Assembly: GCA_965644295.1 (NCBI GenBank) | Contig: CBFFRP010000168.1 | Location: forward strand, 58,640 to 122,639 | Direction of reading: 5' to 3' | Origin: Paraphysomonas bandaiensis | Lineage: Eukaryota; Protista; Chrysophyceae | DNA: 64,000 nt | Part shown: positions 24,934-55,414 of the stretch, piece after piece | Layout: the number at the start of each line of letters is the position of its first letter | Position numbering within the stretch: the stretch's first letter is position 1 | Position numbers and translations under genes: made by a program | The notes under the pieces: generated by a model | The model's database searches: none | The model's input: only the letters and a program-made list of their open reading frames with translations | What the model was told of the DNA's origin: nothing

Positions 24934-25983
24934 AGGCTGCACGGATGTGGAAGTTACTCCTCCATTGCCACAGCCTTGTGAGGAGAGGGGAGTCCAGACT
25001 ACTGCCTTCTTATCAAAGCGCCTCAGCTTATATCCTTAAGCAGAGCTGCATCACTGACTTGTTAGCCTGCTGGAATAGCAGAGTGATATGAGTATGCAAT
25101 GGAGGATGATGAAGCCGTTGAGGGGGAGGAGCCCTTCGTTCCTCAATACAATAGTGGTGTCAGTGGCTTGCCCAGATGGTCCAGAAGATCAGAATATAGT
25201 TGTGGCGACTATCACCACCCTCAATATTACCTCTAGACTCATCCCAGTAGTATTACCGGAGGATCTTGTCCTGCTCATCTAGAGCTATGTCTTCATAATA
25301 CATAGTACCATGTAGCGAACACGTTGACTAATATCAGCGCAGGGATGGGACGATGTGTATGCCTCAGTTACTTGCGGTCCTACGTCATCAATCAGTGTCC
25401 TCTGAGTACTGGTCAGAGGATACTCCCCTTGAATCCGCATGCATGATATCCCCACAGTATCATTTCATTATATTGTCAATAGCGATATGGTCTTGTTATC
25501 TACTTATGCTTCTGTCATGCCTGTATAATACTGTTAATTTCCGATGTTAACAAATAATTACAGTGTACAGAACAGCAGTACAGTATGATAGATAGCCAGC
25601 AAATAAATGTGATAGAGTTTGCTTTGTTCAGTAATTTCCATTAGTTTATTATTTATTGCTCATTTCTGCAACAAATCTGGATAGTGACAATTTCTTATAT
25701 TAACTATAATAAGCAGAATCATGTGCGGAGCAGCACTGTCATGATAGAGAATGTTGTTTCCATATCTGTGATCTAGAGACCGAGCAAGCGCTAAACTAGA
25801 GACTAGGTGATCATAGATAAACACTAATAGTGTATTATTAGTATTGGTTTTAATGTAGTTTCTCTATTCCAAGACCTGTATGAGTCTTACAGGAACAGGA
25901 AACAAACACGTAAATAACGCCGTATTATTATGTGATTATATCAGATTCTTAAGCTTGTATAAATTAATAACAAATTGCACTAA

Positions 25984-28964
25984 TCATATAAAAATATTAA
26001 TATTCGTCATCTTTGACATCTGTTGTTTCGTTTGTTGTTTTATGATCAAAACGTCTTCTTCTCTTATGACGTCTATGATATCTTCTTTCAAAAGTTGTTG
26101 ACTGTAAGAGTCATAGTTGCTCAAATCATCTGGTATAGAGTAGAATGTTTCGTCCAACAGTGTTTCGTCGAACAGTGTTTCGTCGAAAAGGCTACTCCAT
26201 CTTCCGGTTTCCGCTGTATTTTCATTTTCGTCAGATGAACATGATTGGCATCGAATGTTATTTGTCACATTCACCGAATTCATTCCATCGTTTATTTCTT
26301 TCCCAGAATTATTATATTTAGAGCGTTTATTATTGGTTTTGTTTTCTTTAATTCGCAACACGTCATTTTCTTGTGTGCGATTTTCATCAATTAGTAAAAA
26401 ATCATTCTGCTTGCGCTTGGTATGCCTCACAGGTGTGCGATGCAATTCAGATTCAGAGGAGAATGTTTGGTTGAATGAGTTACTCCCACTTTCGGTTTCC
26501 ACTGAAGTTTGGTCTTCGTCAGATGAAGCAGAAGAGTATTCAGGGGTACTCTCAAAATTATTGTCGCTCAAATCATCCCATTCAATTCCGGAGGACAATG
26601 TTTGGTTGGATGAGTTACTCCCACTTTCGGTTTTTATTGTACTGTCAAAGTCATTGTCGCTCAAATCATCCCATTCAAATCCGGAGGACAATGTTTGGTT
26701 GGATGAGTTACTCCCACTTTCGGTTTCCACTGAAGTTTGGTCTTCGTCAGATGAAGCAGAAGAGTATTCAGGGGTACTCTCAAAATTATTGTCGCTCAAA
26801 TCATCCCATTCAAATCCGGAGGACAATGTTTGGTTGGATGAGTTACTCCCAATTTCGGTTTTTATTGTACTGTCAAAGTCATTGTCGCTAAAATCATCCC
26901 ATTCAAATCCGGAGGACAATGTTTGGTTGGATGAGTTACTCCCACTTTCGGTTTCCACTGAAGTTTGGTCTTCGTCAGATGAAGCAGAAGAGTATTCAGG
27001 GGTACTCTCAAAATTATTGTCGCTCAAATCATCCCATTCAAATCCGGAGGACAATGTTTGGTTGGATGAGTTACTCCCAATTTCGGTTTTTATTGTACTG
27101 TCAAAGTCATTGTCGCTAAAATCATCCCATTCAATTCCGGAGGACAATGTTTGGTTGGATGAGTTACTCCCACTTTCGGTTTTTATTGTACTGTCAAAGT
27201 CATTGTCGCTCAAATCATCCCATTCAAATCCGGAGGACAATGTTTGGTTGGATGAGTTACTCCCACTTTCGGTTTCCACTGAAGTTTGGTCTTCGTCAGA
27301 TGAAGCAGAAGAGTATTCAGGGGTACTCTCAAAATTATTGTCGCTCAAATCATCCCATTCAATTCCGGAGGACAATGTTTGGTTGGATGAGTTACTCCCA
27401 CTTTCGGTTTTTATTGTACTGTCAAAGTCATTGTCGCTCAAATCATCCCATTCAAATCCGGAGGACAATGTTTGGTTGGATGAGTTACTCCCACTTTCGG
27501 TTTCCACTGAAGTTTGGTCTTCGTCAGATGAAGCAGAAGAGTATTCAGGGGTACTCTCAAAATTATTGTCGCTAAAATCATCCCATTCAAATCCGGAGGA
27601 CAATGTTTGGTTGGATGAGTTACTCCCACTTTCGGTTTCCACTGAAGTTTGGTCTTCGTCAGATGAAGCAGAAGAGTATTCAGGGGTACTCTCAAAATTA
27701 TTGTCGCTCAAATCATTCAGTACAGATCCAGAGGAGAATATTTGGTTGGATGAGTTACTCCCACTTTCGGTTTCCACTGAAGTTTGGTCTTCGTCAGATG
27801 AAGCAGAAGAGTATTCAGGGGTACTCTCAAAGTTATTGTCGCTCAAATCATTCAGTGCAGATCCAGAGGAGAATGTTTGGTGGCATGAGTTACTCCCACT
27901 TTCGGTTTCCACTGAAGTTTGGTCTTCGTCAGATGAAGCAGAAGAGTATTCAGGGGTACTCTCAAAATTATTGTCGCTCAAATCATTCAGTACAGATCCA
28001 GAGGAGAATGTTTGGTGGCATGTGTTACTCCCACTTTCGGATTCCACTGTGGATTCTATTTCGTCAGATGAACTTGATTGGTGTCGACTGCCATTTTCTT
28101 GTGTAAGATTTTCATCATTTTGAGTTCTTGATCTGCTGGGCCTGTTCATCACGGTCATGGGAGGCAATTCTGTAGGTCCAACGCCAGAGCATTGAGCCAC
28201 AATACGAACCACAACATTTTTCTGAGGAACTTGTTTATTAGACCCCGTCTTTATTGGCTCCACTCTGAATTGCATAGTGCACTTCCCATTTCTAAGAGGT
28301 ACTTGTTTGTCTGGTTTAACCACAGTTCTCTCGGTATCGTTGCATTGAGCACTGCACAGCACGCCTTCGAGCGACGTATCGTTTATCGCATTTCCACTCC
28401 TATCTATGATACTGACATCGACCGTGATGCAATTTCTCTTGTTTTTTGTATAAAACACGCGCGAAATGTCTGTGATGTTATCAACATGTAGTTTTGCCCG
28501 TATGACGCGATATGTTCTGCATGACTCACAACTCAGGCGGCCATCGATGGTCCTCGCATGTATACGAAAACTCCTGCCAATAGTCTTTACTGTAACCGGA
28601 AACTCAACATAACCTTCAGGGGGAATGGTTACACTTCGTGTCTCTTCCATCTCCTGTATGTATAGTTATATGAGGGAAGATAAGGGTGAGAGAGGTTTGA
28701 TCCGCACCAGTCTACAGTTCGGATCAGATGCGTCCACAATCTCCACTTCCGTGGGAATACTATCCCTGAGGAATATACAATATGAGCATAGTAGCAACAG
28801 CAACAGTGTTATATTGATGAGATGCACCTGCTGCGTAGTAAAATGGAGCCTTCCTCTGTGCTTCTGACGTGAGACAATTCGACACGAATCGCATCGCCCA
28901 TAAACACAAACTCCTCTTCATGTGATTCATAACCAGGTGTTGTTATGTTCAAGCCTTCTGTCAT
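25984..28964 (-). CDS. Gene X copy 2: unknown protein with a beta-rich N-terminal domain and an expanded Ser/acidic repeat region; exons 28964-28828, 28765-28708, 28653-25984
   Basis: Two in-frame GT-AG introns give MTEGLNITTPG...RSRDSIPTEV...CRLEMEETR. The same structure is conserved in copy 3. Confidence 0.75.
26450..28010 (-). repeat. Coding tandem repeat of 135-bp (A, 45 aa) and 93-bp (B, 31 aa) units, order AAAABABBABABA (N to C)
   Basis: A = DLSDNNFESTPEYSSASSDEDQTSVETESGSNSSNQTLSSGFEWD; B = DLSDNDFDSTIKTESGSNSSNQTLSSGIEWD. Confidence 0.9.
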
Positions 28965-31900
28965 TATGGTGGGTATTGATTACTATGAAATGCAGTCGAC
29001 TTATGGAGAGGAGAGTTATACGTGGATTGCACAGACTGCTGCACGCACAGTTCTAGAGTTGCTGCACACGCACTCTCAGAACAAATAAAAGAGCGTATCT
29101 TTCAGAGACATCTGAGCTGAAAACTACGAACCATTTAAAAACTACCATTTTCGATCACTGAATTTTCAAAATTCTGCATTTTTGTGTTTATAGACACAGT
29201 ACTGGATATATATATGTGATAGAATTCCTGGAATTGTGAATTCTTGATTTTCTCTTCATTCTTGCCAATGTGTGATCTAAAATGGGAGTTTTTATACCAT
29301 ATATACTGGATTTCTATATATAAACATACAGTACATGTATATAGAGTACCTACTCACATTGTACACATACATTCCACGACATAGTACCATAGTACTCGTG
29401 CTGTGGTACTCTCAGTGTAGTGCTTACACACATACCTCCTTTACGTACACACATACACATACACATACACACATACACATAACACATACACATACACATA
29501 ACACATACACATAGAGCAGCATCATAGACACATACACAGAGAGCAGCAACACATGCACATAGAGCAGCATACACACCACAGTAAGAAGCGGTGGGGTCCC
29601 TAATGCCGATCTCAGTTTCTATCCACTGCTCTCACTGATTCTTCACAAGGTCATCAGATGATTGTGGAGGAGAGCGGAGTCCAGACTACTGCCTTCTAAT
29701 CACATCGCCTCAGCTTATATCCTTAAGAAGAGCTGCATCACCCCTCCAGCAAGAGTATATGCTGAGGACCACACCCTCGAGCATCACTGACTTGTATGCC
29801 TGCTGGAGTAGCAGAGTGATATGAGTATGCAATGGAGGATGATGAAGCCGTTGAGGGGGAGGAGCCCTTCGTTCCTGGTGGTGTCAGTGGCTTGCCCAGA
29901 TGGTCCAGAAGATCAGAAGTCATATATAGTTATGGCGACTATCACCACTCTCAATATTACCTCTAGACTCATCCCAGTAGTATTGCCACAGGATCTTGTC
30001 CTGCTCATCTAGAGCTATGTCTTCATAATACATAGTACCATGTAGCGAACACGTTGACTAATATCAGCGCAGGGATGGGACGATGTGTATGCCTCAGTTA
30101 CTTGCGGTCCTACGTCATCAATCAGTGTCCTCTGAGTACTGGTCAGAGGATACTCCCCTTGAATCCGCATGCATTATATCCCCACAGTATCAGTTCAATA
30201 TATTGTCAATAGCGATATGGTCTTGTTAACTACATATGCTTCTGTCATGCCTGTAGAGTACTGTTAACATATAATTACAGTGTACAGTAGAGCAGTACTG
30301 TTTATTGTAAACCGGTTACTGTACATTTTACTGTTGACTTTTACGGCTAATAAATGTGAATTGATCGTGTCTGCCTATTGTCACATTGATTATTTACTCA
30401 ACTGTAGTTTGTCTTGTTCAGTAATTTCCATTAGTTTATTATTTATTGTTTATTGCTGCAACAGATCTGGATAGTGACAATTCCTTATATCTTATATTAA
30501 CTAAAATGAAATAAAGTAGCACTGTCATGATAGATAATATTGGTCTATATATATGATCTAGAGACCGAGCAAGCGCTAGACTAGAGGCTAGGCGATGATA
30601 GATAAACACCAATAGTATACTATGAGTACTGCTTTTATTCCAAGACCTATATGAGTTTTTACAAGAACAGGACACAAACATGTAAGTAACGCCGTAGTAT
30701 TATGCAGTGATTATGTGATTATATCAGATTCTTAAGCTTGTATAAATTACTAACACATTGTACTAATCATATTATAAAAACATTAATATTCGTCATCTTT
30801 GATGCCCCATATTGACAGCGTAACTAATTACTGCGTGCGGCCCCCTAGTGGGTGCGGCTGAGTGCTGCTGCGATTGCTCGCCTCTACCTATGTACACATT
30901 GCTTAGTTAAGCACTACCCCACCCGGGGTCTCACTGCATATTCAGCGCTGAATACCATGTGATAATGATGTAGCTAGTTGGGTTCAGTAGGTAGCTAGCA
31001 AATAACGTATGGGACTTAAATCAAATATTAGTTAGGTACCCACCCGACCCCCATCCGAATCTACCTAAGTACGCGCTCAGAATGGGGCATCTGCTGCATT
31101 TACTATACAAGTCCATGCATCACTTAGATATTTAGGTTTCTGTTCACGAATCCACTCCAGTACATGTAAGTGTCCACCCCGAGCAGCTGCCACGATGCAA
31201 GTCCATGCATCCCATTGACATGGAGGGTCCTGTGAACGAAGCCACTTCAGTTCATCTACGTATCCACCCCTAGCAGCAGCGGCGCAAGTGTCTTTACTCC
31301 AAGGACATGGAGGGTCCTGTTTACGAAGCCACTGCAGTACCTGCAAGTGCCCACCCTCTGCAGCAGCAGTGCAAGTCTGTGCATTCCAGGGGCATTCAGG
31401 TTTATGTGAACGAAGCCACTGCAATACCTGCAAGTGTCCACGGACATGGAGGGTCATGTGAACGAAGCCATCTCAGAATAGCCAAGTGTCCACCCATAGC
31501 AGCCTTAACGCAAGTCTCTTTATCAATTAGACATTTAGGTTTCTGTTCACGAATCCAATCCAGAACATCGAATTGTTCATCCCGAGTAGCAGCCACGATG
31601 CAAGTCCATGAATCCCATGGACATGGAGGGTCCTGTGAACGAAGCCACTGCAGTATATTCTAGTGACTACCACTAGCAGCAGCTTCGCAAGTCCGTTCAT
31701 TCCAGGGACATGGAGGGTCCTGTGAACGAAGCCACTGCAGTACCTTCAAGTGACCACCATTAGCAGCAGCTTCGCAAGTCCGTTCATTCCAGGGACATGG
31801 AGGGTGCTGTGAACGAAGCCACTGCAGTACCTGCAAGTGACCACCATTAGCAGCAGCTTCGCAAGTCCGTTCATTCCAGGGACATGGAGGGTCCTGTGAA

Positions 31901-33767
31901 CGAAGCCACTGCAGTACCTGCAAGTGACCACCATTAGCAGCAGCTTCGCAAGTATCTTCATTCCAGGGACATGGAGGGTCCTGTGAACGAAGCCACTGCA
32001 GTACCTGCAAGTGACCACCATTAGCAGCAGCTTTGATGCAAGTCCGTTCATTCCAGGGACATGGAGGGTCCTGTGAACGAAGCCACTGCAATACCTGCAA
32101 GTGACCACCATTAGCAGCAGCTTCGCAAGTCCGTTCATTCCAGGGACATGGAGGGTCCTGGTCACGAAGCCACTGCAATACCTGCAAGTGACCACCTCTA
32201 GCAGCAGCTAGGCAAGTCCGTTCATTCCAGGGACATGGAGGGTCCTGTGAACGAAGCCACTGCAGTACCTTCAAGTGACCACCATTAGCAGCAGCTTCGC
32301 AAGTCCGTTCATTCCAGGGACATGGAGGGTGCTGTGAACGAAGCCACTGCAGTACCTGCAAGTGACCACCATTAGCAGCAGCTTCGCAAGTCCGTTCATT
32401 CCAGGGACATGGAGGGTCCTGTGAACGAAGCCACTGCAGTACCTGCAAGTGACCACCATTAGCAGCAGCTTCGCAAGTATCTTCATTCCAGGGACATGGA
32501 GGGTCCTGTGAACGAAGCCACTGCAGTACCTGCAAGTGACCACCATTAGCAGCAGCTTTGATGCAAGTCCGTTCATTCCAGGGACATGGAGGGTCCTGTG
32601 AACGAAGCCACTGCAATACCTGCAAGTGACCACCATTAGCAGCAGCTTCGCAAGTCCGTTCATTCCAGGGACATGGAGGGTCCTGGTCACGAAGCCACTG
32701 CAATACCTGCAAGTGACCACCATTAGCAGCAGCTTCGCAAGTATCTTCATTCCAGGGACATGGAGGGTCCTGTGAACGAAGCCACTGCAGTACCTGCAAG
32801 TGACCACCATTAGCAGCAGCTTTGATGCAAGTCCGTTCATTCCAGGGACATGGAGGGTCCTGTGAACGAAGCCACTGCAGTACCTGCAAGTGACCACCAT
32901 TAGCAGCAGCTTCGCAAGTATCTTCATTCCAGGGACATGGAGGGTCCTGGTCACGAAGCCACTGCAATACCTGCAAGTGACCACCATTAGCAGCAGCTTC
33001 GCAAGTATCTTCATTCCAGGGACATGGAGGTGTCACGCAGCAGTATACACTGCGTGTATTTGTATATAGAATACTGTGCTGTATATAGTGTGTATATATC
33101 GTATATATCTGGAGCAGTATATGGTATATATATGGTATACATATGCATATAGAGGTTGTCATATACAGGGTATATTCACTGTATTTGGGACTTACCTTTA
33201 TCAGTTTACGACATTCGAGGTTTTCAGTTTAGTAGCTGAGATACGTTTTTCAGTTTCTGACGGCGATTCACATTTGATTTGGACTGAAGTCCAGAACTTC
33301 GAAGTTTTAGTACAAAATACGTGATTTCGTAAATAGTCGAAGTTTTCGTATGTGAATATTGGTTTTAGTACGTGAATATTGTTTTTCGAGTGTGAAGTGT
33401 TGATCGTAGTGTAGTGTTGATCTACGTTGAACGAGATGGGTGTTTGCTCATTCTTGTCACTGACTTTATAATTTACTTTTCTTAAAGAGCACCTACGGTT
33501 TGTTAGTGTTTCTGGCAGTGCGCCCGTCGTTGCGCCCTGGACAGTATCGCAGCCCGCTGGCGGATACTATTTTGGTGGGTTGTAGAGTCTAGACAAGAGA
33601 TCATCTTTTCTTGGTCCATTCAGAGTTGAGTCACGGTTTGTGAGTCATCTGCGGGCACAGAAAAGTTACAGTAATATTACTTAGCTTAGCTTAGCAGTAT
33701 ATTTGTACCAAGTTAATATATATTGAGCCCAAGAGATAAGTGTGTTTAGTTTTCGTGTGATTGAGCC

Positions 33768-34784
33768 ATGGAGCCTCAAGGCTTCCAAGACATGGTCAAC
33801 ATGTTCAGTCAACAATTTCAGCAACTAAGAGACGAGCTTCGGGATGAGATTCAACAGCAAAATCAGCAGCTTCGGGAGGACATGCATCAGCTTAATCAGC
33901 AACAGCTAAGGCAGGAGGAGAATTTCAATGAGTTTCGAGTGGAAATTACTCAACGTCTTACAGCAGTCGAAGAGATAAGATCTCGGAGGACTTCACCAGT
34001 AGCTTCAGTTGTTTCCAAAGAAAAAGTTTCACCTCTTCCTGTAAAGGAAATTTCCCAAATTCCATTTGATGATTCAAAAGTCAAGGAAGTTGTTTGTGTT
34101 GTGAATCAGCCTTCGGATGTTCATATTGAGAGTATCAATTCTGCCAAGGTGGAGCCTTTGTTAATGCAAGATATTGTTGTCTCTGATATTATGGAATTAC
34201 CTGCTGAGGTGGAGAATAGTTTTTCAGTGTTTCCTGATTCTTATGATAAGGATTCAAATTCCCCTCAGAACGTGAACTCAGTCGTGGAATGCCCTGTTAT
34301 GTGTGTCAAGGAACAGTGCATTAGCCCCGTGCATGTTGAGTCAGATGTTGTGATACTTGTTGAGGAGATGATAAGCAATGTTGTCTCAAAGATTGATCAG
34401 GAGCAGCAGATCGATGGACCTGTTGTGCAATTCAATGGTTGTTCTTCTGTACCGGTTGTTTCAGTGAATCAGCTTTCACATGAGGAACCTACTGTCAAGG
34501 ACGATATTGGCTGTGATTCATCTGTTGTCTCAATCGTTCAATTAGCAATGTCAAATGCCATGGTTGCTAGTGGTACATTGATTCCATTAAGTTATTGTGC
34601 AGTGCTAGGACAGATTATGGAAGAGCATGTTGTGTTGTCATTGAGTCAGCTTGAAGTGGTCAGTTTTATTTACTGTAAGATGATGGTTGAGAAACTAAGC
34701 GTGTGTTTTAAAGAACTTGTGTTGTGCGATGAGCATGGTCCTGGACCGCCTATTGCCAAATCGGTGTGTCTTTTTCAATTCTAA
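33768..34784 (+). CDS. G1 ORF1, gag-position protein with N-terminal coiled coil
   Basis: First ORF after the 5' LTR; Q/E-rich heptads; no zinc knuckle visible. Confidence 0.55.
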   Translation: MEPQGFQDMVNMFSQQFQQLRDELRDEIQQQNQQLREDMHQLNQQQLRQEENFNEFRVEITQRLTAVEEIRSRRTSPVASVVSKEKVSPLPVKEISQIPFDDSKVKEVVCVVNQPSDVHIESINSAKVEPLLMQDIVVSDIMELPAEVENSFSVFPDSYDKDSNSPQNVNSVVECPVMCVKEQCISPVHVESDVVILVEEMISNVVSKIDQEQQIDGPVVQFNGCSSVPVVSVNQLSHEEPTVKDDIGCDSSVVSIVQLAMSNAMVASGTLIPLSYCAVLGQIMEEHVVLSLSQLEVVSFIYCKMMVEKLSVCFKELVLCDEHGPGPPIAKSVCLFQF

Positions 34785-36701
34785 GTTCAACCTGTTGGAA
34801 TAATGAAATGTGGTTGTACCAGATGTTGATGTTGTATTACTAATGGAGTTACATTATCATCAGTGTGCCTATTCATTTCATTTCGGTTTGGATGTGAGAT
34901 AGTATTGTATTGTAACGAATGTCTTCATGAGTTTCTTTCTCAGAGGATTCGTTGTGCAATGCTTGCGATGGAGAGATTGTATTGTATTGTAAATATTTTG
35001 TCCGATATTTTGTCAGTTCAAATTCAGTTTGTTGTGATGAGTGTCTACATGGGAGTCAATTCGAACATATGTTGTCAGTGAATACTATGTTCTTAGAATC
35101 AAGTGTGTGTTGAGCAGAGAAGCTAGTCAACAGCAGTTTGTTGTGGAGTGTCTACATGGGGTGCAGTGTTCAAATCATTGAGTGATGTTTCATGGCGTCA
35201 ATGTGAATGTGTTCGATGTGGATGCGAGAGTCAGTTGTGAATTTGTATCATATTTTATGTTCATATATATTAAGATATTGTAGAAGCAAGGCCGATGGAG
35301 TTTTCTTTGTATTCCTGGAATGGAGAGTTCAATGAGCCTGTGTTTCAAATTGTACAGATTCGACATACGTGATATCATTTTACCTATACTATATACCGAT
35401 GATACTTATATATAATACTATATATTGTATAATCGAGAGTGAGCTATTCAATATTAGCGATTGTTTCTTTTCTGGTTCAGTTTGATTTATTTGTTGTTCA
35501 ATAATTTCGATGAGATATATATGATTAATGTTTTCGATTTGAGAGTCCATTACTATTGAGTTGTTCAATTGTTTGAAGTTCAGATTTGTTTTGAGAGTTG
35601 AAGTTTGTGTTTTGCAAAGTGAGGTGTCAAAGTACTAAAGTTGTATTGAGTTAGACTGAGAGTTAAGAGCGAAAATTCTGTCAGTGAGTTCAATAGTATG
35701 TTGGCCAATGATGTACTGTCATACTGTTTAATTTCATTTCAATGATGGTTGCAAGAGGAGTTTCTGAAGTTTGTTGAAAATGTTTCAAACGTGTTACAGA
35801 TTAAATGGGAGTCATCTTGTCAAATTACGTGAATCTTCTCGTGACATTATCGTTTATAAGTTTTCCAAGCTGGATACATTGTTCGATGATATACATAGTT
35901 CATTTTGTGGACAGTGTTGTTGCACATGTGTTTTGTATTGTGCTGCAATTGTATTGAAAGAGTTTGAATGTCTATTGCCAATTGCAATTTTGAATCAAGT
36001 GAGAGCAGATTCTTCTGTGAGGGAGTGTTTTTGATATTCATTGTTCTTCATCAGGAGTTATCTCCGATTACATTGCTTGTCAGTATGGTGGTGATATTGT
36101 GAGGTTCAGAATGTGATGCGAGTGAAAGTGATGTTTTCTTCAAAAGACAAGAGAGATGTTGTTAGTTTTTTCAACGGTTCTTTGCATTTAAACTTGAAGT
36201 GTTGAGTACAAGAAGGTTACTGAGAATATTTTGTTCGGTGGTATCTAAACTTCCAGAGTGCTATTGTGATGGTATTTGAAATGTACCTACAATTTTGAAT
36301 TCCTTGATTCAAAATAAGTTGTTTGAGTTTGATGATATTATATTATATTCTTGGAATGTAAAATTCTTTCGAGGTTGTCACTTCTCAAACAGTTCAGGGT
36401 AATGAGTGAGATCCTGTGTCAGCGATGTGATAGAAAGTCTGTTGTTCGAACTCTAATGTCAGAGAACTATCAGATGCTATGTACTCCTGAGTTGAAAATT
36501 GATTCTATGAGTGTATCAAAACTGGTTGTTATACATTGTTCTGAGTAACTATGTGGGAATCAATGAGTCAAAATTCAACATGGAAGTTCTGCAGTTAACT
36601 TGATGTTTTTTTATAATTTCCAGGTTTCCTTTTCCATGTAAGTGTTCTACAGATTTCCAGTCGACAAAAAAGGCTATCTATGATGTGGGTATTGAGCCTG
36701 T

Positions 36702-38879
36702 GTGTCAATATCTCAACAAGAGAATGTACTTGATTTCTTTCTATGGTTTCTAAAATTTTCAGATCTTGCTTTCAAATGGTCAACTATAGACAAGGAATGT
36801 TTTGGAATATTCTATTCTATCTTTAAGTTGTCGTACTACTTGAGAGGAAAACACTTTACGATTATGACGGATCATGCAAATCTAAAGTGGATGGAAATTT
36901 CAGTGGTTGACCGAATAGTTCGAATGAGAATGTTCATGCAAAACTTTGATATGGATTTGTTACATTTCAAAGGTAAACTAAATCGTTTCGCGGATTGGTT
37001 ATCAAGAATGGGGCAGGAGAGAGCAGCTTCTTGTGTCATGTTGTTAGATCTTTGTCTTGAAGATTCATGTTCAGATATTGAATTGTGTCTAGGAGTGGAG
37101 TATGAGAATTCTAGTCTGTTGTCGGAAGACCAACTTTTTATGTATGATGAGAGTGGTATGTTGTCAGCGGAGGCAGATGATCTTGCTTGTGTTTCAGAAT
37201 TCCCAGAGGAACTAGTCAAAGCCTTGGATGAGTTAGCTAGTCAGAATTTACAGCCAAAGTCTCTAAAAGAAGCTTTTGATCTAGTACACAATGGTAGAAT
37301 GGGTCATCACGGAGCTAAGAGAACATGGTTGAAACTTAGTAAGGTATTTCCGGGTCATACCTTGACAACAGAAATTATCCAAGATTTTATTGATCGATGT
37401 CCTATTTGTCAAAAGTTAGGTTATGATATGAGTACATCGTTGCAAGCACCGATAAGAGCATTAAATCTTGATAATTGCAGACATTTTGTGGGTTTCGATA
37501 CATTGACTGTTACTCCGGTAGATGCTAATGGTTATTGTTGTATTCATGTGGTGAAACAATTACCATCTCGCCTAGTAGGAATATATCCAGCTCGTAATTA
37601 CTCAGCAGAGGGAGTGGCACGTGCTTTGTTCAGTTACTTTGTCACATATGGAATTTCTGAAGTGATGGTATCGGATCCAGGTTCGAATATCACAGCTAGG
37701 GTTGTTCAGTTACTCCTGAAATGGTTTGGAGTCCGCTTTAGAATGTCGTTAATGAATAGACATGAGTCCAACATGGTGGAACGAAGTAATCGGGAATTAT
37801 TGCGTTTTCTTAGTGCATTGGTTCATGACGAAAGATTAGAAAATTGGAGTGACCCAGAATGCTATTTGTTGATACAATTCATTCTCAACGATGAAATTTC
37901 AAGTGAGACGGGTCTTTCACCTTTTGAGTTTACGTTTGGAACAATGGATTCAAAGTATTTTCATATCCCTGACAGTTCTTCAGATGAATTTGCTTCTTCG
38001 ACTTATATTTCCAATTTCAATGATAACCTTAAAGCTATCAGGAAAATTGCGTGTGAAGTTCAGAAGAAAATTCAGAATAAACGTATGTCCAAAACCCCAG
38101 CAGAGAAAATGACTCAATATCAACCAGGCCAGCTTGTTTTGTTTAAACTGGATGTAACAAAACATATGCCGTCCAAATTATATCCTCGATTCAAAGGACC
38201 GTATGAAGTAGTATCCACGTACAAGGCCGATGTTATTTGTACTCATTTAGTAATGCGGTTTGATGTGACGTTACATATGTCTTGGTTGAAGCCATTCTTT
38301 GGTAGCAAGGAGGAGGCTTTTCGCATAGCAATGATTGACTATAGGCAATTTTCTCTTGACAAAGTGGTGGCTTATAGAGGGGACCCCGAAAAAAGAACTA
38401 CTATGGATTTCAGAGTTCTCTTCTCCGATCAATCGTTGTTGTGGATGCCATATTCTACTGATCTTGCGACAAGTGAAGCTTTTCATGAATATATTTTCAG
38501 TGTCCCTGAATTGTTTCCCTTACGTTTTTCTGCAAAGGAAGCAGTGCAACAGAAGACTAAACTCAAGAAGTGTGTTATATCCACTGTGATACCTGGAGAC
38601 GTTGTCTTTGTTAATCTTCGAGCGTGGGGTGCAGACTTCTATGACGCTTTAGAATTACCTAATGCATATGATACTCTCTATGTAGTTCAATGTGTCTATA
38701 AGCGTTGGGCGGGCCGCAAAAAGATCACTATTGATGTGTATTGTTCTCTCTTTAACTCTACTTTTGAATGGTCAGCCTATGATGTCCAGAACTATGGAAC
38801 TACACGAGATTTTAACCCTGACACCATGGTTCTGGTAGACTCCGCCTTCTGTGCCAGATTTCCCAATATCCTCTCTTAA
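36702..38879 (+). CDS. G1 partial pol: RNase H C-terminal half, integrase and chromo-like domain
   Basis: WSTIDKECFGI..., TDHANL and NRFADWLSR (RNase H). HNGRMGHHG...CPIC zinc finger. GFDTL / SDPG / NMVERSN (DDE). GPY motif and LDKVVAYRGDP chromo-like segment. Confidence 0.9.
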   Translation: MSISQQENVLDFFLWFLKFSDLAFKWSTIDKECFGIFYSIFKLSYYLRGKHFTIMTDHANLKWMEISVVDRIVRMRMFMQNFDMDLLHFKGKLNRFADWLSRMGQERAASCVMLLDLCLEDSCSDIELCLGVEYENSSLLSEDQLFMYDESGMLSAEADDLACVSEFPEELVKALDELASQNLQPKSLKEAFDLVHNGRMGHHGAKRTWLKLSKVFPGHTLTTEIIQDFIDRCPICQKLGYDMSTSLQAPIRALNLDNCRHFVGFDTLTVTPVDANGYCCIHVVKQLPSRLVGIYPARNYSAEGVARALFSYFVTYGISEVMVSDPGSNITARVVQLLLKWFGVRFRMSLMNRHESNMVERSNRELLRFLSALVHDERLENWSDPECYLLIQFILNDEISSETGLSPFEFTFGTMDSKYFHIPDSSSDEFASSTYISNFNDNLKAIRKIACEVQKKIQNKRMSKTPAEKMTQYQPGQLVLFKLDVTKHMPSKLYPRFKGPYEVVSTYKADVICTHLVMRFDVTLHMSWLKPFFGSKEEAFRIAMIDYRQFSLDKVVAYRGDPEKRTTMDFRVLFSDQSLLWMPYSTDLATSEAFHEYIFSVPELFPLRFSAKEAVQQKTKLKKCVISTVIPGDVVFVNLRAWGADFYDALELPNAYDTLYVVQCVYKRWAGRKKITIDVYCSLFNSTFEWSAYDVQNYGTTRDFNPDTMVLVDSAFCARFPNILS

Positions 38880-41639
38880 TTTAGAATTTTCCTAATTTCC
38901 GGAATCTCTTATCCGTTGGAAGGAAAAAGAGGGTAGTGTCACGCAGCAGTATACACTGCGTGTATTTGTATATAGAATACTGTGCTGTATATAGTGTGTA
39001 TATATCGTATATATCTGGAGCAGTATATGGTATATATATGGTATACATATGCATATAGAGGTTGTCATATACAGGGTATATTCACTGTATTTGGGACTTA
39101 CCTTTATCAGTTTACGACATTCGAGGTTTTCAGTTTAGTAGCTGAGATACGTTTTTCAGTTTCTGACGGCGATTCACATTTGATTTGGACTGAAGTCCAG
39201 AACTTCGAAGTTTTAGTACAAAATACGTGATTTCGTAAATAGTCGAAGTTTTCGTATGTGAATATTGGTTTTAGTACGTGAATATTGTTTTTCGAGTGTG
39301 AAGTGTTGATCGTAGTGTAGTGTTGATCTACGTTGAACGAGATGGGTGTTTGCTCATTCTTGTCACTGACTTTATAATTTACTTTTCTTAAAGAGCACCT
39401 ACGGTTTGTTAGTGTTTCTGGCAGTGCGCCCGTCGTTGCGCCCTGGACAGTATCGCAGCCCGCTGGCGGATACTATTTTGGTGGGTTGTAGAGTCTAGAC
39501 AAGAGATCATCTTTTCTTGGTCCATTCAGAGTTGAGTCACGGTTTGTGAGTCATCTGCGGGCACAGAAAAGTTACAGAGGGTCCTGTGAACGAAGCCACT
39601 GCAATACCTGCAAGTGACCACCATTAGCAGCAGCTTCGCAAGTCCGTTCATTCCAGGGACATGGAGGGTCCTGGTCACGAAGCCACTGCAATACCTGCAA
39701 GTGACCACCTCTAGCAGCAGCTAGGCAAGTCCGTTCATTCCAGGGACATGGAGGGTCCTGTGAACGAAGCCACTGCAGTACCTTCAAGTGACCACCATTA
39801 GCAGCAGCTTCGCAAGTCCGTTCATTCCAGGGACATGGAGGGTGCTGTGAACGAAGCCACTGCAGTACCTGCAAGTGACCACCATTAGCAGCAGCTTCGC
39901 AAGTCCGTTCATTCCAGGGACATGGAGGATCCTGTGAACGAAGCCACTGCAGTACCTGCAAGTGACCACCATTAGCAGCAGCTTCGCAAGTATCTTCATT
40001 CCAGGGACATGGAGGGTCCTGTGAACGAAGCCACTGCAGTACCTGCAAGTGACCACCATTAGCAGCAGCTTTGATGCAAGTCCGTTCATTCCAGGGACAT
40101 GGAGGGTCCTGTGAACGAAGCCACTGCAATACCTGCAAGTGACCACCATTAGCAGCAGCTTCGCAAGTCCGTTCATTCCAGGGACATGGAGGGTCCTGGT
40201 CACGAAGCCACTGCAATACCTGCAAGTGACCACCTCTAGCAGCAGCTAGGCAAGTCCGTTCATTCCAGGGACATGGAGGGTCCTGTGAACGAAGCCACTG
40301 CAGTACCTTCAAGTGACCACCATTAGCAGCAGCTTCGCAAGTCCGTTCATTCCAGGGACATGGAGGGTCCTGTGAACGAAGCCACTGCAGTACCTGCAAG
40401 TGTCCACCTCTAGCAGCAGCTAGGCAAGTAATTTCATTCCAGGGACATGGAGGGTCCTGGTCACGAAGCCACTGCAATACCTGCAAGTGACCACCTCTAG
40501 CAGCAGCTAGGCAAGTCCGTTCATTCCAGGGACATGGAGGGTCCTGTGAACGAAGCCACTGCAGTACCTTCAAGTGACCACCATTAGCAGCAGCTTCGCA
40601 AGTCCGTTCATTCCAGGGACATGGAGGGTCCTGTGAACGAAGCCACTGCAGTACCTGCAAGTGTCCACCTCTAGCAGCAGCTAGGCAAGTAATTTCATTC
40701 CAGGGACATGGAGGATCCTGGTCACGAAGCCACTGCAGTACCTTCAAGTGTCCACCTCTAGCAGCAGCAGCACAAGTGTCTTCATCCCAGGGACATAGAG
40801 GATCCTGGTCACGAAGCCACTGCAGTACCTGCAAGTGACCACCTCTAGCAGCAGCTAGGCCAGTAATTTCATTCCAGGGACATGGAGGGTCCTGGTCACG
40901 AAGCCACTGCAATACCTGCAAGTGTCCACCTCTAGCAGCAGCAGCACAAGTGTCTTCATCCCAGGGACATGGAGGGTCCTGTGAATGAAGCCACTGCAGT
41001 ACATTCAGGCATCCACCCCTAGCAGCAGCTTCGCAAGTATCTTCATTCCAGGGACATGGAGGGTCCTGTGAACGAAGCCACTGCAATACATCCAAGTGTC
41101 CTTCAATAGCAGCAGCTACGCAAGTCTGACTATTCCATGGGCCAGGAGGTTCCTGTGCATGAAGGCCCACGAGGTGCATCATTTGCTGTAGTCTGCCGTA
41201 TTGTGCACATGTATTCATTAGTTTGATGTGTGGGCAGCCCATAGCCAGAGCCCATGAGACCATTGAGTTGGTCATACAGTAGTGAGATGCATGTGACTCA
41301 AGTCTCTCTCTGCTCTTATCAGTGTAGACGATATCGTGAAATCTCTTACAAGTCATGATCACTGGAAGGACAGCCGTGTGTGGGATCATAGAGATGATGA
41401 TACGAAGAACATCATCGTTAAGAGCAGATAGAGTGATTTCACTCATAGTTTATATGAGGCTGATAGATTGCTAATACACTGCAAAATAATGATACCAGAT
41501 CAGATATACACACATATATATACAGTACAGGAGTACGGAGTACATATATTCTAGATACTAGAGAAGGGGACAGACCATAGAAAAGATCCTCAACCACAAA
41601 GACACATACACCGTCACGTACGTACAGTAGTAAAAATAC

Positions 41640-41780: not shown

Positions 41781-43772
41781 GACATCGTAGTGAGCGTAGC
41801 TTTCAGAGACATCTGAGCTGAAAACTACGAACTATGTAAAAAACTACTATTTCCGATCACTGAATTTTCAGAATTCAGTATTTTTATGTTTTTATGCACA
41901 ATGAGCAAGAAAATTACCAAAATATTGGATATTGGTGTGACAGTATTCCTGGAACTGTGAATTCTAGATTTCTCGTCATGTGTGATATAAAATGGGAGTT
42001 TTTATACACACTGGATTTCTATAAATAAACATATATGTATGGAATACCTACAGCGCAACGCGATGAGGGTCCGCGAAAGAAAATCGCGGTTTATCATGAA
42101 ATCGCGATAAAGGTTTTTAGCATAAAAGTGGCAGTATTGGTATATATAAATCCCTGTTTTTCCTTTAAAAACTCTATTGTTGGAGTTTTTCTGACATTTC
42201 GTAGCAGTTGTGAGTGTCGTGATTACTAGACATCAAGTGCACATATCTTACACTATATACTATCATATGCTCACATAACTGTAGTGTATAAATGCGCACA
42301 CGAAAAAGAAGAGCATCTTCTTTTGCATGACATCTCGCACGCCAGTTGCCGATAGACTCTGATAAATGCGTTCATGAATATTACATAATTAGAGCAGCAT
42401 ACACACCACAGTAAGAAGCGGTGGGGTCCCTAGTGCCGATAGCAGTTACTATCCACTGCTCTCACTGATTCTTCACAAGGTCATGATGATTGTGGAGGAG
42501 AGCGGAGTCCAGACTACTGCCTTCTAATCACATCGCCTCAGCTTATATCCTTAAGAAGAGCTGCATCACCCCTCCAGCAAGAGTATATGCTGAGGACCAC
42601 ACCCTCGAGCATCACTGACTTGTATGCCTGCTGGAGTAGCAGAGTGATATGAGTATGCAATGGAGGATGATGAAGCCGTTGAGGGGGAGGAGCCCTTCGT
42701 TCCTGGTGGTGTCAGTGGCTTGCCCAGATGGTCCAGAAGATCAGAAGTCATATATAGTTATGGCGACTATCACCACTCTCAATATTACCTCTAGACTCAT
42801 CCCAGTAGTATTGCCACAGGATCTTGTCCTGCTCATCTAGAGCTATGTCTTCATAATACATAGTACCATGTAGCTAACACGTTGACTAATATCAGCGCAG
42901 GGATGGGACGATGTGTATGCCTCAGTTACTTGCGGTCCTACGTCATCAATCAGTGTCCTCTGAGTACTGGTCAGAGGATACTCCCCTTGAATCCGCATGC
43001 ATGCTACCCCCGCAATATCATTTCAATATATTGCCAATAGCGATATGGTCTTGTTATCTACATAGGCTTCTGTCATGCCTGTATAATACTGTTAATTTCC
43101 GATGTTAACAAATAATGACAGTGTACAGTACAGTATGATAGATAGCCAGCAAATAAATGTGATAGAGTTTGCTTTGTTCAGTAATTTCCATTAGTTTATT
43201 ATTTATTGCTCATTTCTGCAACAAATCTGGATAGTGACAATTTCTTCTATTAACTAAAATAAGCAGAATCATGTGCGGAGTAGCACTGTCATATAGAGAA
43301 TGTTGTTTCCATATCTGTGATCTAGAGACCGAGCAAGCGCTAAACTAGAGACTAGGTGATCATAGATAAACACTAATAGTGTATTATTAGTATTGGTTTT
43401 AATGTAGTTGCTCTATTCCAAGACCTGTATGAGTCTTACAGGAACAGGAAACAAACACGTAAATAACGCCGTAGTATTATGCAGTGATTATATCATATTC
43501 TTAAGCTTGTATAAATTAATAACAAATTGCACTAATCATATAAAAATATTAATATTCGTCATCTTTGATATCTGTTTTTTTGTTTGTTGTTTTATGACCT
43601 CTTCTTCTCTTCTCAAAATTTCATGTCGTCTATGATATCTTCTTTCAAAAGTTGTTGACTGTAAGAGTCATAGTTGCTCAAATCATCCAGTATAGAGTAG
43701 AATGTTTCGTCGAAAAGTGTTTCGTCGAAAAGGCTACTCCATCTTCCGGTTTCCGCTGTATATTCATTTTTG

Positions 43773-45796
43773 TCAGATGTCATAGTCGCTCAAATCATCC
43801 AGTATAGAGTAGAATGTTTCGTCGAAAAGTGTTTCGTAGAAAAGGCTACTCCATCTTCCGGTTTCCGCTGTATTTTCATTTTCGTCAGATGAACATGATT
43901 GGCATCGAATGTTATTTGTCACATTCACCGAATTCATTCCATCGTTTATTTCTTTCCCAGAATTATTATATTTAGAGCGTTTATTATTGGTTTTGTTTTC
44001 TTTAATTCGCAACACGTCATTTTCTTGTGTGCGATTTTCATCAATTAGTAAAAAATCATTCTGCTTGCGCTTGGTATGCCTCACAGGTGTGCGATGCAAT
44101 TCAAATTCAGAGGAGAATGCTTGGTTGAATGAGTTACTCCCAATTTCGGTTTTCATTGTAGATTCTAATTCGTCAGATGAGGATGAGTTACTCCCACTTT
44201 CGGATTCCACTAAAGTTTGGTCTTCGTCAAATGAAGTAGAAGAGTGTAGACGGATAGTGTTAGAGTTGTAGTCGCCCATATCATTCAGTTCAAATCCAAA
44301 AGCAAATGTTAGGTTGGATGAGATATTCCCATTTCTGGTTTCCACTGTAGTTTGGACTTCAGATGAAGCAGAAGAGTATTCAAGGATACTGTCAAAGTCA
44401 TTGCCGCTAAAACCATCCCGTTCAAATCCAAAGGAGAATGTTTGGTGGGATGTGTTACTCCCACTTTCGGTTTCCACTGAAGTTTGGTCTTCGTCAAATG
44501 AAGTAGAAGAGTGTAGACGGATAGTGTTAGAGTTGTAGTCGCCCATATCATTCAGTTCAAATCCAAAAGCAAATGTTAGGTTGGATGAGATATTCCCATT
44601 TCTGGTTTCCACTGTAGTTTGGACTTCAGATGAAGCAGAAGAGTATTCAAGGATACTGTCAAAGTCATTGCCGCTAAAACCATCCCGTTCAAATCCAAAG
44701 GAGAATGTTTGGTGGGATGTGTTACTCCCACTTTCGGTTTCCACTGAAGTTTGGTCTTCGTCAGATGAAGCAGAAGAGTATTCAGGGATACTCTCATAAT
44801 TATCGTCGCTCAAATCATTCAGTACAGATCCAGAGGAGAATGTTTGGTGGCATGTGTTACTCCCACTTGCGGTTGCCACTGTGGATTCTATTTCGTCAGA
44901 TGAACTTGATTGGTGTCGAATGCCATTTTCTTGTGTAAAATTTTCATCATTTTGAGTTCTTGATCTACTGGGCCTGTTCATCACGGTCATGGGAGGCAAT
45001 TCTGTAGGTCCAACGCCAGAGCATTGAGCCACAATACGAACCACAACATTTTTCTGAGGAACTTGTTTATTAGACCCCGTCTTTATTGGCTCCACTCTGA
45101 ATTGCATAGTGCACTTCCCATTTCTAAGAGGTACTTGTTTGTCTGATTTAACCACAGTTCTCTCGGTATCGTTGCATTGAGCACTGCACAGCACGCCTTC
45201 GAGCGACGTATCATTTATCGCATTTCCACTCTTATCTTTGGTACTGACATCGACCGTGATGCAATTTGTCTCGTTTTTTGTATAAAACACGCGCGAAATG
45301 TCTCTGATGTTATCAACATGTAGTTTTGCCCGTATGACGCGATATGTTCTGCATGACTCACAACTCAGGCGGCCATCGATGGTCCTCGCACGTATACGAA
45401 AACTCCTGCCAATAGTCTTTACTGTAACGGGAAACTCAACATAACCTTCAGGGGGAATGGTTGCACTTCGTGTCTCTTCCATCTCCTGTATGTATAGTTA
45501 TATGAGGGAAGATAAGGGTGAGAGAGGTTTGATCCGCACCAGTCTACAGTTCGGATCAGATGCGTCCACAATCTCCACTTCCGTGGGAATACTATCCCTG
45601 AGGAATATACAGTATGAGCATAGTAGCAACAGCAACAGTGTTATATTGATGAGATGCACCTGCTGCGTAGTAAAATGGAGCCTTCCTCTGTGCTTCTGAC
45701 GTGAGACAATTGGACACGAATCGCATCGCCCATAAACACAAACTCCTCTTCATGTGATTCATAACCAGGTGTTGTTATGTTCAGGCCTGTCGTCAT
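43773..45796 (-). CDS. Gene X copy 3, with a different repeat region (two 267-bp units) and an earlier stop
   Basis: Near-identical to copy 2 outside the repeat region and has the same two introns. A local duplication near 43665-43880 gives a stop at 43773-43775. Confidence 0.7.
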
Positions 45797-47850
45797 GGTG
45801 GGCATTAATTATGCATCGATGTTGTGTATATTTGTAGCACACTCGAAGCACGAGTAGCACAAGTGAGGACATTTAGAAATTCTTGGAAATTGCCGGTCCG
45901 TATCTTTCAGAGACATCTGAGCTGAAAACTACAAACCATCTAAAAACTACCATTTTCGATCACTGAATTTTCAGAATTCAGTATTTTTATGTTTTTTAGG
46001 CACGATGACCAAGATAACTGGATATTGGTGTGACAGTATTCTTAGAATTGTGAATTCGTAGATTTTCTCATCATTCTTGCTATCGTTTTAGTAGAAAGGC
46101 TGGATTTTGGGGAATATATAGTCAATACATGTAAACGAGGTTGTACATGTATGATGGTATGTATTTCATAATACAGTGGTATGTATTTCTATCTGTTGAT
46201 GATATGGTGCGTATCAGCATCCTTTGTATATTTTTGTTCCAAGATGCCTCTAATATTGAGACAACAAATATATGTATTCCAGCTGTAGTTGTACTGTAGT
46301 AATATAGACAATTTATACTTCAACTTATTCCCGAATCCATTACATTATGAAATTATACGCATCAATGAAGGTCTATGTCATCAGTAAAACATTCATCTCA
46401 GCTCTTCCATAGACTTACTTCGACGGAGTTGTGTATATGGATCATAAACAAGGCGAGTTGTTCCTCCCTATGATCTCAGAGACAACAATACAAGATCTAT
46501 AAAGAGGTACACACAGAAAGGCTCAGAGCGCCCTCATTGCCCCCCTTTATGTGTGTGGTATGACACATAGGATGGTAGAATAAGGTGAATACAGAGCTAG
46601 CTTAAGCCACTAGAGCTACCAGTATGGCTATGTATATGTATATATATATGGGGTAGGGAATGTATATGCATGTATATATATATGTATGTGTTCCATTAAC
46701 ATCAGTCTGTATGTACAGGACGATGAATACGACTGAGGTGTCATATTTATAGATTACAAGTATGATATTTCAGCTGTGGATATACTGTGGAGAGGAATTT
46801 ATCGAAGAAGTCATCCACAGAACACACGCAATGTATGTTTCATTGAATTGTATGATGAGTACTCACAGATATCCCGTATCATGAATTCCGACAAGAGTTG
46901 CGTATTAGTTGTGGCATGATGTATGTATTATAATATAGTAACGTATGATACTATGTATTACATACTATACCCTTTATATGTAATAATATATGTGGTATAA
47001 TATATTGCTGGCAAGAAGACACTGGGTGATATGTAATTGATGTAGGATGGCGAAACATTCCAGCCTCTTTCTTGGCAACAAGCTTCGGATATGCTGGGAG
47101 TGGAAGTGTAGTTCGCCTGTTTAGCTGTGTGCGGTGGGAAATCTCTATTACCCCATGTGTTATTAGTTACGTGTTAATATATTGGTTATGTATGATGTGT
47201 GCTTAGCTCCATATAGTAATAATGTACTTTGAACTGCCGAACTATATCATTACTTTTACGTTTTAACTGTCTTTTAGAAAGCAATAAAGGTGACGCACTG
47301 TCATCTAAACTGTTGCATACACTTTCATATGAACCGTGGTATAAAATGTCATCTGAATGATTGTTGCATGCACTCCTTATGAACTCTCATACGACATGCT
47401 GATGAACTGTTGCGTGCACTGTCATCTAAACTGTTGCATAAACCGTCATATAAACTGTCAATAGACTGTAATAGGAACTGCCTCTATTTTACCAGATATT
47501 GCTTACTAAGTTGTAGAAATAATTTCTTCATCCATAATGTAGTCACCTCCGTTACCGAAGTATCATTTGAAATCTCTCCAGTAAGAGGGAGGTACAATGA
47601 AGAGACTACTGGTGGATCTCCATGTATGTCTCATATCCATGATTCAGAGAATAAGTTTATCTTGCCGTTGTAATACCTTACTGTCATCGTGCATAGACTC
47701 TTTGAGACTACCTCCTGAGCGTTTGCGATCGCTGTTTCTGTCTTCTTATCAGTTCTCAGTTATATATCATAATGATATAATGATATGATATGGTTCCACT
47801 CTTCTATGATACTGTAGACCATACCACTATACGTACTATATACTATACAG

Positions 47851-49803: not shown

Positions 49804-50162
49804 GGTATTTAAGGAGGGTTATGTAGAAACTTGTCCACGACCAGTGAAAGTATCTGTAGAGGTGAGAGAACGAGATTGATGGGCGGTGTGTATGTATATA
49901 TAGAGGTATGTATGAGGGATTACTGAGAATAGAGCAACACACACACTCCACTCAAACATATCCAATAAGATAAGAGTAGATGTTGTTGATTGGATATAGC
50001 GATGTTCATAGTAATACGTACACTTGTATATGAAGAAATTTCTATGATAGTGCTGGTATGTATGTATGTATGTATGTATGTATGTATGTATGTATGTATG
50101 TATGTATGTATGTATGTATGTATGTATGTATGTATGTATGTATGTATGTATGTATGTATGTA

Positions 50163-55260: not shown

Positions 55261-55414
55261 ATGTATGTATGTATGTATGTATGTATGTATGTATGTATGT
55301 ATGTATGTATGTATGTATGTATGTATGTATGTATGTATGTATGTATGTATGTATGTATGTATGTATGTATGTATGTATGTATGTATGTATGTATGTATGT
55401 ATGTATGTATGTAT

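Follow-up and report, generated by a model that had tools for sequence, protein, structure and literature searches.

A covarying palindrome at the 5' LTR edge of Ty3/gypsy retrotransposons as a candidate primer-binding site

Introduction

How does a Gypsy retrotransposon start its minus strand when a perfect palindrome sits where the primer-binding site should be? Priming of reverse transcription is a defining trait of retroelements for which few solutions are known, and the U5 end is by definition the site of the minus-strand primer. Surveys of priming types give tRNA, half-tRNA and Tf1-type self-priming only (PMC6317226; PMC6934838). The element that raises the question, G1, lies in a 64,000-nt stretch of Paraphysomonas bandaiensis DNA (hereafter the window), which also holds a second Gypsy element, G2, and a Copia element.

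Results

G1 is a young, non-autonomous Gypsy element

G1 occupies positions 33031-39576 on the plus strand, which also carries all other features of G1 and G2 given below. Self-comparison of the window showed that 33030-33671 and 38936-39577 are 100% identical. A GAGG target-site duplication (33027-33030 and 39577-39580) flanks the repeats, the downstream one of which ends ...GTTACA at 39576 before the flank GAGGGTCC. The host site is an 87-bp satellite, and an intact, uninterrupted unit of it reads CATGGAGGGTCC, with a single GAGG. The LTR identity, the duplication and the intact satellite unit together define the G1 LTR as 640 bp of the form TG...CA (TGTCAC...GTTACA), with the 5' copy at 33031-33670 and an identical 3' copy at 38937-39576. 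LTR-LTR identity and the GAGG duplication thus fix the 5' LTR end ...GTTACA at 33670, from which the initial annotation had argued. The satellite array that G1 interrupts (87 bp or 29 codons per unit; 31100-33030 and 39577-41165) contains long minus-strand open frames of 500 and 624 aa. Large dispersed repeats with 81-97% identity lie on either side of the G1 region (25048-30800 and 42390-45800) and include tandem units of 135, 228 and 267 bp, in a nested or segmental repeat structure.

Identical TG...CA LTRs, a target-site duplication and a polypurine tract (GGAAGGAAAAAGAGGG, 38918-38933, 3 nt upstream of the 3' LTR) place G1 in the Ty3/gypsy group (Metaviridae). Its ORF1 (33768-34784, 338 aa) has a coiled-coil-like N-terminus and no Pfam match, and corresponds to a shortened version of the gag-like ORF (564 aa) found in an autonomous relative. 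The next 1.9 kb or so (34785-36701), the expected place of protease and reverse transcriptase (RT), are free of ORFs in all frames, and the ORF that follows (36702-38879) encodes an RNase H tail (PF17917), an integrase zinc-binding domain (PF17921) and the integrase core (PF00665). This gap, with the identical LTRs, indicates that G1 is a young, non-autonomous derivative. An ORF-free stretch has thus replaced protease and RT, yet the integrase is intact; identical copies of this 725-aa integrase ORF are present in ENA metagenome assemblies (group P0122, 13 members).

Contig C186 holds the autonomous relative. It has an RT, and its LTR-leader junction is the same as that of G1, so that the palindrome described below is common to both. 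Its 564-aa gag-like ORF is followed by an in-frame stop and a 1314-aa pol. Gag and pol therefore share one frame with a single stop between them (reverse complement of L146+L061), an arrangement that suggests stop-codon read-through rather than frameshifting as the probable route from gag to pol.

Two diverged G1-type LTR-leader junctions (L009 and L010, C410:60390-63116) face one another on a single contig as an inverted pair about 2 kb apart. Separately, a 200-nt segment found on C169 (L062-L065) and C341 (L030) resembles the last part of the G1 LTR at 76% identity. It was rejected as a G1-type junction, since it is no LTR end and sits within a longer repeat that runs on past the G1 LTR end; on C169 the segment occurs at least four times in 13 kb, beside a 1614-aa Gypsy ORF.

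A perfect palindrome lies at the primer-binding position of G1

The G1 junction reads ...GAAAAGTTAC A(33670) GTAATATTACT(33681) TAGCTTAGC..., and the last LTR base joined to GTAATATTACT, the 11 nt that follow it, gives AGTAATATTACT (33670-33681), a perfect 12-nt palindrome that is its own reverse complement and stands at the position of the minus-strand primer-binding site. Our reading agrees with the initial annotation in every detail of this palindrome. The annotation had also reported that the 5' LTR is followed by no TGG-type tRNA site and that the LTR holds no complement to the palindrome, and both statements stood: no TGG occurs from the LTR end to the ORF1 ATG at 33768, and the longest match to the palindrome in the 767 nt upstream is 6 nt, which is the level of shuffled sequences (mean 6.2, maximum 8). 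On the 3' side the palindrome is adjoined by a pentamer repeat, read from the sequence as (CTTAG)x3 (33680-33695), of which the diverged copies L009 and L010 have two units instead of three. The CTTAG repeat and the U5 end AAGTTA can lengthen the palindromic helix, with the penultimate LTR C staying unpaired.

The junction is well supported as a sequence. Contigs from independent public runs (24 runs, stored as assembled contigs, from several organisms and marine metagenomes) cover 33628-33877 without differences, and the 5' LTR-leader junction has nine further copies in the genome (87-100% identity), all of which read ACAGTAATATTACTTAGC, with the palindrome unvaried. The invariance among these nine copies is consistent with constraint. 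By our own calculation from G1 composition (0.256 per pair), a perfect 12-nt palindrome would arise at one given start base with a probability of about 3e-4; chance is ruled out because the palindrome recurs in relatives.

A second Gypsy element carries a different palindrome at the same place

G2 has the same architecture as G1. Its 5' LTR (TGTGGCATG...CATCACA, 55415-55606) has ends fixed by 3' and solo LTR copies elsewhere in the genome (L037-L039), its own 3' LTR being absent from the window, and the 1892-aa gag-pol ORF (55628-61306) has the order RT, RNase H, integrase (RVT_1 at residues 1006-1169, RNase H at 1239-1367, integrase at 1426-1590). The closest solved relative is the Ty3 RT/RNase H (E 1.4e-62); of this domain order G1 retains the RNase H tail and integrase alone. 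The 11 nt after the G2 LTR are ATATCGATATT, and with the terminal A they form AATATCGATATT (55606-55617), a perfect 12-mer unlike that of G1, which ends 10 nt upstream of the gag-pol ATG. Diverged sister families of G2 (L045, L054-L059), with LTRs ending ...GGGCACA and ...AGCTACA, keep the same 11 nt. A polypurine tract precedes the 3' LTR in G1, the G2 family and relatives alike. Many of the relatives carry a chromodomain (PF00385), the domain that marks the chromovirus branch when it stands at the integrase C-terminus, and for which neither G1 nor G2 has a Pfam match at the thresholds used.

Insertions of the G2 family (55261-55414; L031-L048) are almost only in (ATGT)n/(ACAT)n microsatellites, and all examined copies are flanked by the repeat, which suggests target-site specificity for it. 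The Copia element (50160-55260) adjoins G2 in the same microsatellite. Its LTRs do not have the form TG..CA: they end CGTAGAG...CTCTACG, with a 7-nt terminal inverted repeat. The 16 nt that follow its 5' LTR (50518-50533, GTGATAGAAAATTATG) match 50350-50365 within the LTR exactly in reverse complement. As a sequence pattern this complement is a Tf1-type self-priming signature, and self-priming is therefore predicted to occur in this genome.

The palindrome covaries across two deeply separated Gypsy lineages

Relatives of the G2 pol number in the hundreds (33-57% identity), and almost all of them come from metagenomes of marine or fresh water. With a profile built from 14 of them we collected 80 metagenomic contigs and scanned these for perfect palindromes. 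A perfect palindrome of 10-18 nt was found in 53 of the 80, just 5' of gag or after the LTR, the latter position being read in contigs assembled across the LTR. Almost always the palindrome is preceded by C and has the form A...T, which puts its first base at the A of the terminal CA. About 25 of the 80 contigs have no perfect palindrome; most of these have no leader, and a few have a preceding T or one mismatch.

The G1 lineage is separated from the G2 lineage on the pol tree by a branch of about 2.6 substitutions per site, and has relatives of its own at 39-66% identity. All six of its families with a readable leader have a palindrome, about 65-420 nt upstream of gag: AGTAATATTACT in L179, CAGTAAATTTACTG in L180, CAGTAATATTACTG in L181, AGTATTAATACT in L182, AGTAAATTTACT in L183-185 and AGAAACGTTTCT in L186-188. 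At 41-50% pol identity the lineage includes AGTAATATTACT, CAGTAATATTACTG, (C)AGTAAATTTACT(G), AGTATTAATACT and AGAAACGTTTCT. Over both lineages we counted 32 distinct perfect palindromes of 10-18 nt. Among them are AATA-NNNN-TATT, whose centre takes 10 of the 16 possible self-complementary forms, AGTA..TACT, AGTT..AACT and ACAGTTTCGAAACTGT, and on the pol tree 29 palindrome states need at least 32 changes. Self-complementarity is therefore kept while the sequence changes, the outcome on which the initial annotation had staked its reading.

The list of palindromes was itself gathered by a palindrome scan and is to that extent circular; two further results are free of this circularity. First, the LTR end was fixed in nine elements (G1, G2, L078, L088, L102, L128, L096, L091 and L179) by comparing two LTRs or solo copies, with no reference to the palindrome, and in all nine the terminal A is the first base of the palindrome, or else the palindrome takes in the terminal ACA. 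Second, we compared coding windows with leader windows, each of which spans the 150 nt leading up to the first ATG of the longest ORF and was taken without palindrome pre-selection. A perfect palindrome of at least 12 nt occurred in 23 of the 57 leader windows vs 100 of the 1554 coding windows (odds ratio 9.8, Fisher p = 1.7e-12), an enrichment that is a lower bound, as many leaders exceed 150 nt.

These results bear on whether the palindrome acts at the level of DNA, as the site of a dimeric protein or as a cruciform, or has arisen by chance or through an assembly artefact. Palindromic DNA sites are typical of dimeric proteins. The sequence here varies freely with its symmetry kept, however, unlike a protein site; the leader enrichment argues against chance; and the junction was confirmed in independent runs, the genome assembly and metagenomes from many samples, which argues against an artefact. 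We regard all of these explanations as very improbable.

No complement was found in the LTRs or among host tRNAs

Two known kinds of partner were considered for the site. For a Tf1-type complement we searched the 800 nt upstream of the site in 46 elements (G1, G2 and 44 relatives) and found longest matches of 4-9 nt, as expected from shuffles. With no second complement in the LTRs, Tf1-type priming is unsupported.

For host tRNAs we used 29 distinct sequences for 17 amino acids, a partial set, within which no match to the G1 site appeared and the best complementarity was 6 nt. The best tRNA complementarity of G2 is 8 nt to the conserved T-loop and lies downstream of the palindrome. It was rejected as a primer site, being at chance level, outside the palindrome and absent from the sister families. 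Binding of the site by some other abundant small RNA of the host, such as a tRNA fragment or a tRNA half, is a further conceivable case, as in copia-type elements; half-tRNA priming is known (PMC6317226), and the incompleteness of the tRNA set leaves it some room. The weak G1 complementarity speaks against this, as does the structural consideration that a perfect 10-12-nt palindrome fits no canonical tRNA arm. Moreover, conserved host RNAs cannot provide a match to each of 32 sequences with nothing in common but self-complementarity. Priming by a host small RNA is in our judgement the least probable of the explanations considered, with hardly any chance of being correct.

The conserved pairing favors a two-strand duplex over a hairpin

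Since the site is self-complementary, a second RNA molecule of the same element is the only RNA certain to bear its complement. A palindrome can also fold on itself, and the two cases differ at the centre, where a hairpin would leave four bases as a free loop. The central 4 nt are self-complementary in 55 of 55 sites, with TCGA, TTAA, ATAT, ACGT, AGCT, AATT, TATA, CGCG, CTAG, GTAC and others as centres. That these bases are kept paired favors a two-strand duplex over a hairpin. Predicted energies for the isolated cores are 0 to -3.6 kcal/mol for the hairpin vs -5 to -23 kcal/mol for the dimer, and in a 70-nt context the dimer is predicted to be favored over two monomers by -11 (G1) and -16 (G2) kcal/mol. 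Several all-A/T cores are predicted to be weak (about -6 to -7 kcal/mol), and all-A/T palindromes tend to greater length.

An intramolecular route competes with such a duplex. In such a snap-back, the cut 5' fragment would fold and copy its own U5-R, or an extended hairpin would set the cut with no second RNA involved. Monomer folds do put the palindrome in a hairpin with U5 in the stem; in G1, G2 and some relatives U5 can pair with the leader, the penultimate C being unpaired, and Tf1 priming is largely intramolecular according to literature cited in PMC5445492. Yet a 12-nt palindrome folded with a 4-nt loop would leave that loop free to vary, against the invariant self-complementarity of the centre, and the core hairpin energies are near 0. 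Nor is the flanking helix conserved across relatives: pairs 9-16 from the centre are near random expectation, and among 51 distinct sites only pairs 8 and 9 exceed random, not convincingly. We therefore consider a snap-back improbable.

Dimer priming as a candidate mechanism

Because the U5 end is where the minus-strand primer anneals, we hypothesized that these Ty3/gypsy lineages have given up tRNA primers and use the palindrome as their minus-strand primer-binding site, which acts by pairing two element RNAs. We give this reading about an even chance of being right. We infer that RNAs pair in vivo, that one or both are cut, which enzyme does so, and that the cut end primes; the steps would be as follows. 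Two element RNAs would pair by the 12-nt core, in a duplex predicted at about -5 to -23 kcal/mol. One strand, or both reciprocally, would then be cut at the 3' edge of the duplex or one base inside it, most likely by the element's RNase H, by analogy with Tf1. The freed 3'-OH would be extended into the U5 of the partner, which under this proposal is why the LTR ends exactly where the palindrome starts. If priming is reciprocal, each primer would be shortened to roughly the palindrome as RNase H digests the copied R-U5.

The scheme has two consequences of its own. If both genomes are cut after the palindrome, the resulting body fragments would be left with no site for the second strand transfer, so that a third, uncut RNA or a cut in one strand only would be needed. 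In addition, a primer paired to the terminal A, CA or ACA would require a source for those LTR bases, either a cut 1-3 nt inside the duplex or the retention of ribonucleotides.

In its most specific form, packaged genomes would pair by their palindromic sites, RNase H would nick each of them, and each would prime the other, so that genome dimerisation and priming are one event. Such reciprocal dimer priming might operate in two or more deep lineages of Gypsy elements from aquatic protists, and perhaps in the fungal GalEa elements discussed below. We offer this version tentatively and would not bet on it at even terms.

Palindromes that bring two genomes together are familiar from retroviruses, in the DIS loop of HIV-1 and in the palindrome inside the HIV-2 primer-binding site, where they initiate dimerisation. 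As is proposed for the elements described here, self-complementarity in the 5' leader pairs two genomes, and there are subtype-specific variants; the retroviral palindromes differ, however, in being 6-10 nt long, lying in a loop and being additional to a tRNA site rather than the priming site itself. The palindrome of G1 and its relatives might likewise be a dimerisation or packaging signal, or the apex of a 'conserved hairpin site', that adjoins the LTR by accident while some other primer starts the minus strand. The G1 and G2 palindromes top a longer imperfect hairpin of the U5 end and leader, retroviral palindromes that mediate genome dimerisation are well known (discussed in PMC5445492), and the authors of the GalEa study could fit their site to no priming model. 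Several observations run the other way: the stretch immediately 3' of the LTR, where a primer has to anneal, is the palindrome in every case; the gap between palindrome and ATG in G2 is only 10 nt; no TGG site or common non-palindromic motif follows the palindrome across relatives; and any primer acting in trans would need to contain each of the 32 palindromes. A dimerisation signal with a separate primer is thus unlikely, although a better candidate than the snap-back.

Discussion

The system most similar to the one proposed here is GalEa, a group of Ty1/copia elements of fungi (Donnart et al. 2017, PMC5445492), which have no tRNA site, no complement in the LTR and no fitting model. Their 'Conserved Hairpin Site' is a 9-bp box after the 5' LTR that becomes palindromic once the final LTR A is included, giving 10-nt palindromes in essentially two variants, A+CTGATCAGT and A+CTAATTAGT. 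A further conserved box, placed 12-41 nt downstream, completes a hairpin with a fixed A/A mismatch (PMC5445492). The inclusion of the final LTR A and the lack of both a tRNA site and an LTR complement are as in G1, G2 and their relatives. By contrast, GalEa belongs to the Copia superfamily and to Pezizomycotina, whereas the elements here are Ty3/gypsy elements of aquatic protists, as seen from domain order and the Ty3 RT match, with palindromes of 10-18 nt in 32 variants instead of 10 nt in two main ones. No recurrent counterpart of the second box was seen by eye in the 90 nt downstream of the palindrome in 55 of our elements. The GalEa study was a single-host fungal one, and the covariation evidence, which makes a strong case for the pairing model, comes from the elements described here.

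Searches of the open full-text literature turned up no account of such a palindromic primer site for Gypsy elements. A palindrome at the same place in fungal Copia elements had already been published (PMC5445492). What we describe is a variant in another superfamily than GalEa, with far more sequence variants, and the idea has a partial precedent there.

Mechanistically the closest model is Tf1. According to work cited in PMC5445492 and PMC6317226, its RNase H cuts an RNA duplex to yield an 11-nt self-primer. Together with the Tf1-type complement of the Copia element in this window, this serves as a precedent for the priming proposed here. Elements of the Tf1/sushi type (Tf1, Tf2, Maggy, Skippy and Tcn1; also the Copia element TAR) resemble ours in that they are Ty3/gypsy elements with a site directly after the LTR and, on our proposal, in priming that needs no tRNA; the 11-nt site of Tf1 uses the element's own RNA as primer, released by RNase H. 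The Tf1 site is non-palindromic and is complementary to the opening 11 nt of the transcript, which fall within the LTR, whereas the site here is complementary to itself. Ty3 offers the nearest solved RT/RNase H, the same domain order, TG..CA LTRs and a polypurine tract, but it is primed by initiator tRNA-Met on a bipartite site.

The palindromic candidate primer site is a selected, widespread and clearly covarying trait: it recurs in two Gypsy lineages that are very divergent, in several families within a single genome, and in many samples of marine and fresh water. If dimer priming is correct, it would add a further way of starting reverse transcription in retroelements to tRNA, half-tRNA and Tf1-type 5'-end self-priming. 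The trait also connects these Gypsy elements with fungal Copia elements, whose 'conserved hairpin site' is unexplained. LTR annotation tools that require a tRNA-type site will miss or misclassify such elements. Family-specific palindromes could also govern RNA pairing, and hence which non-autonomous elements parasitise which helpers.

Additional observation

One contig of the same genome, C669 (L147, L148 and L169; about 20-24% GC), is mitochondrial. NCBI lists its rps12 and nad5 solely as proteins of 'Rickettsiales bacterium' MAGs (100% identity), the next nad5 being 76% identical, and the mitochondrion has thus apparently been binned as a bacterium.
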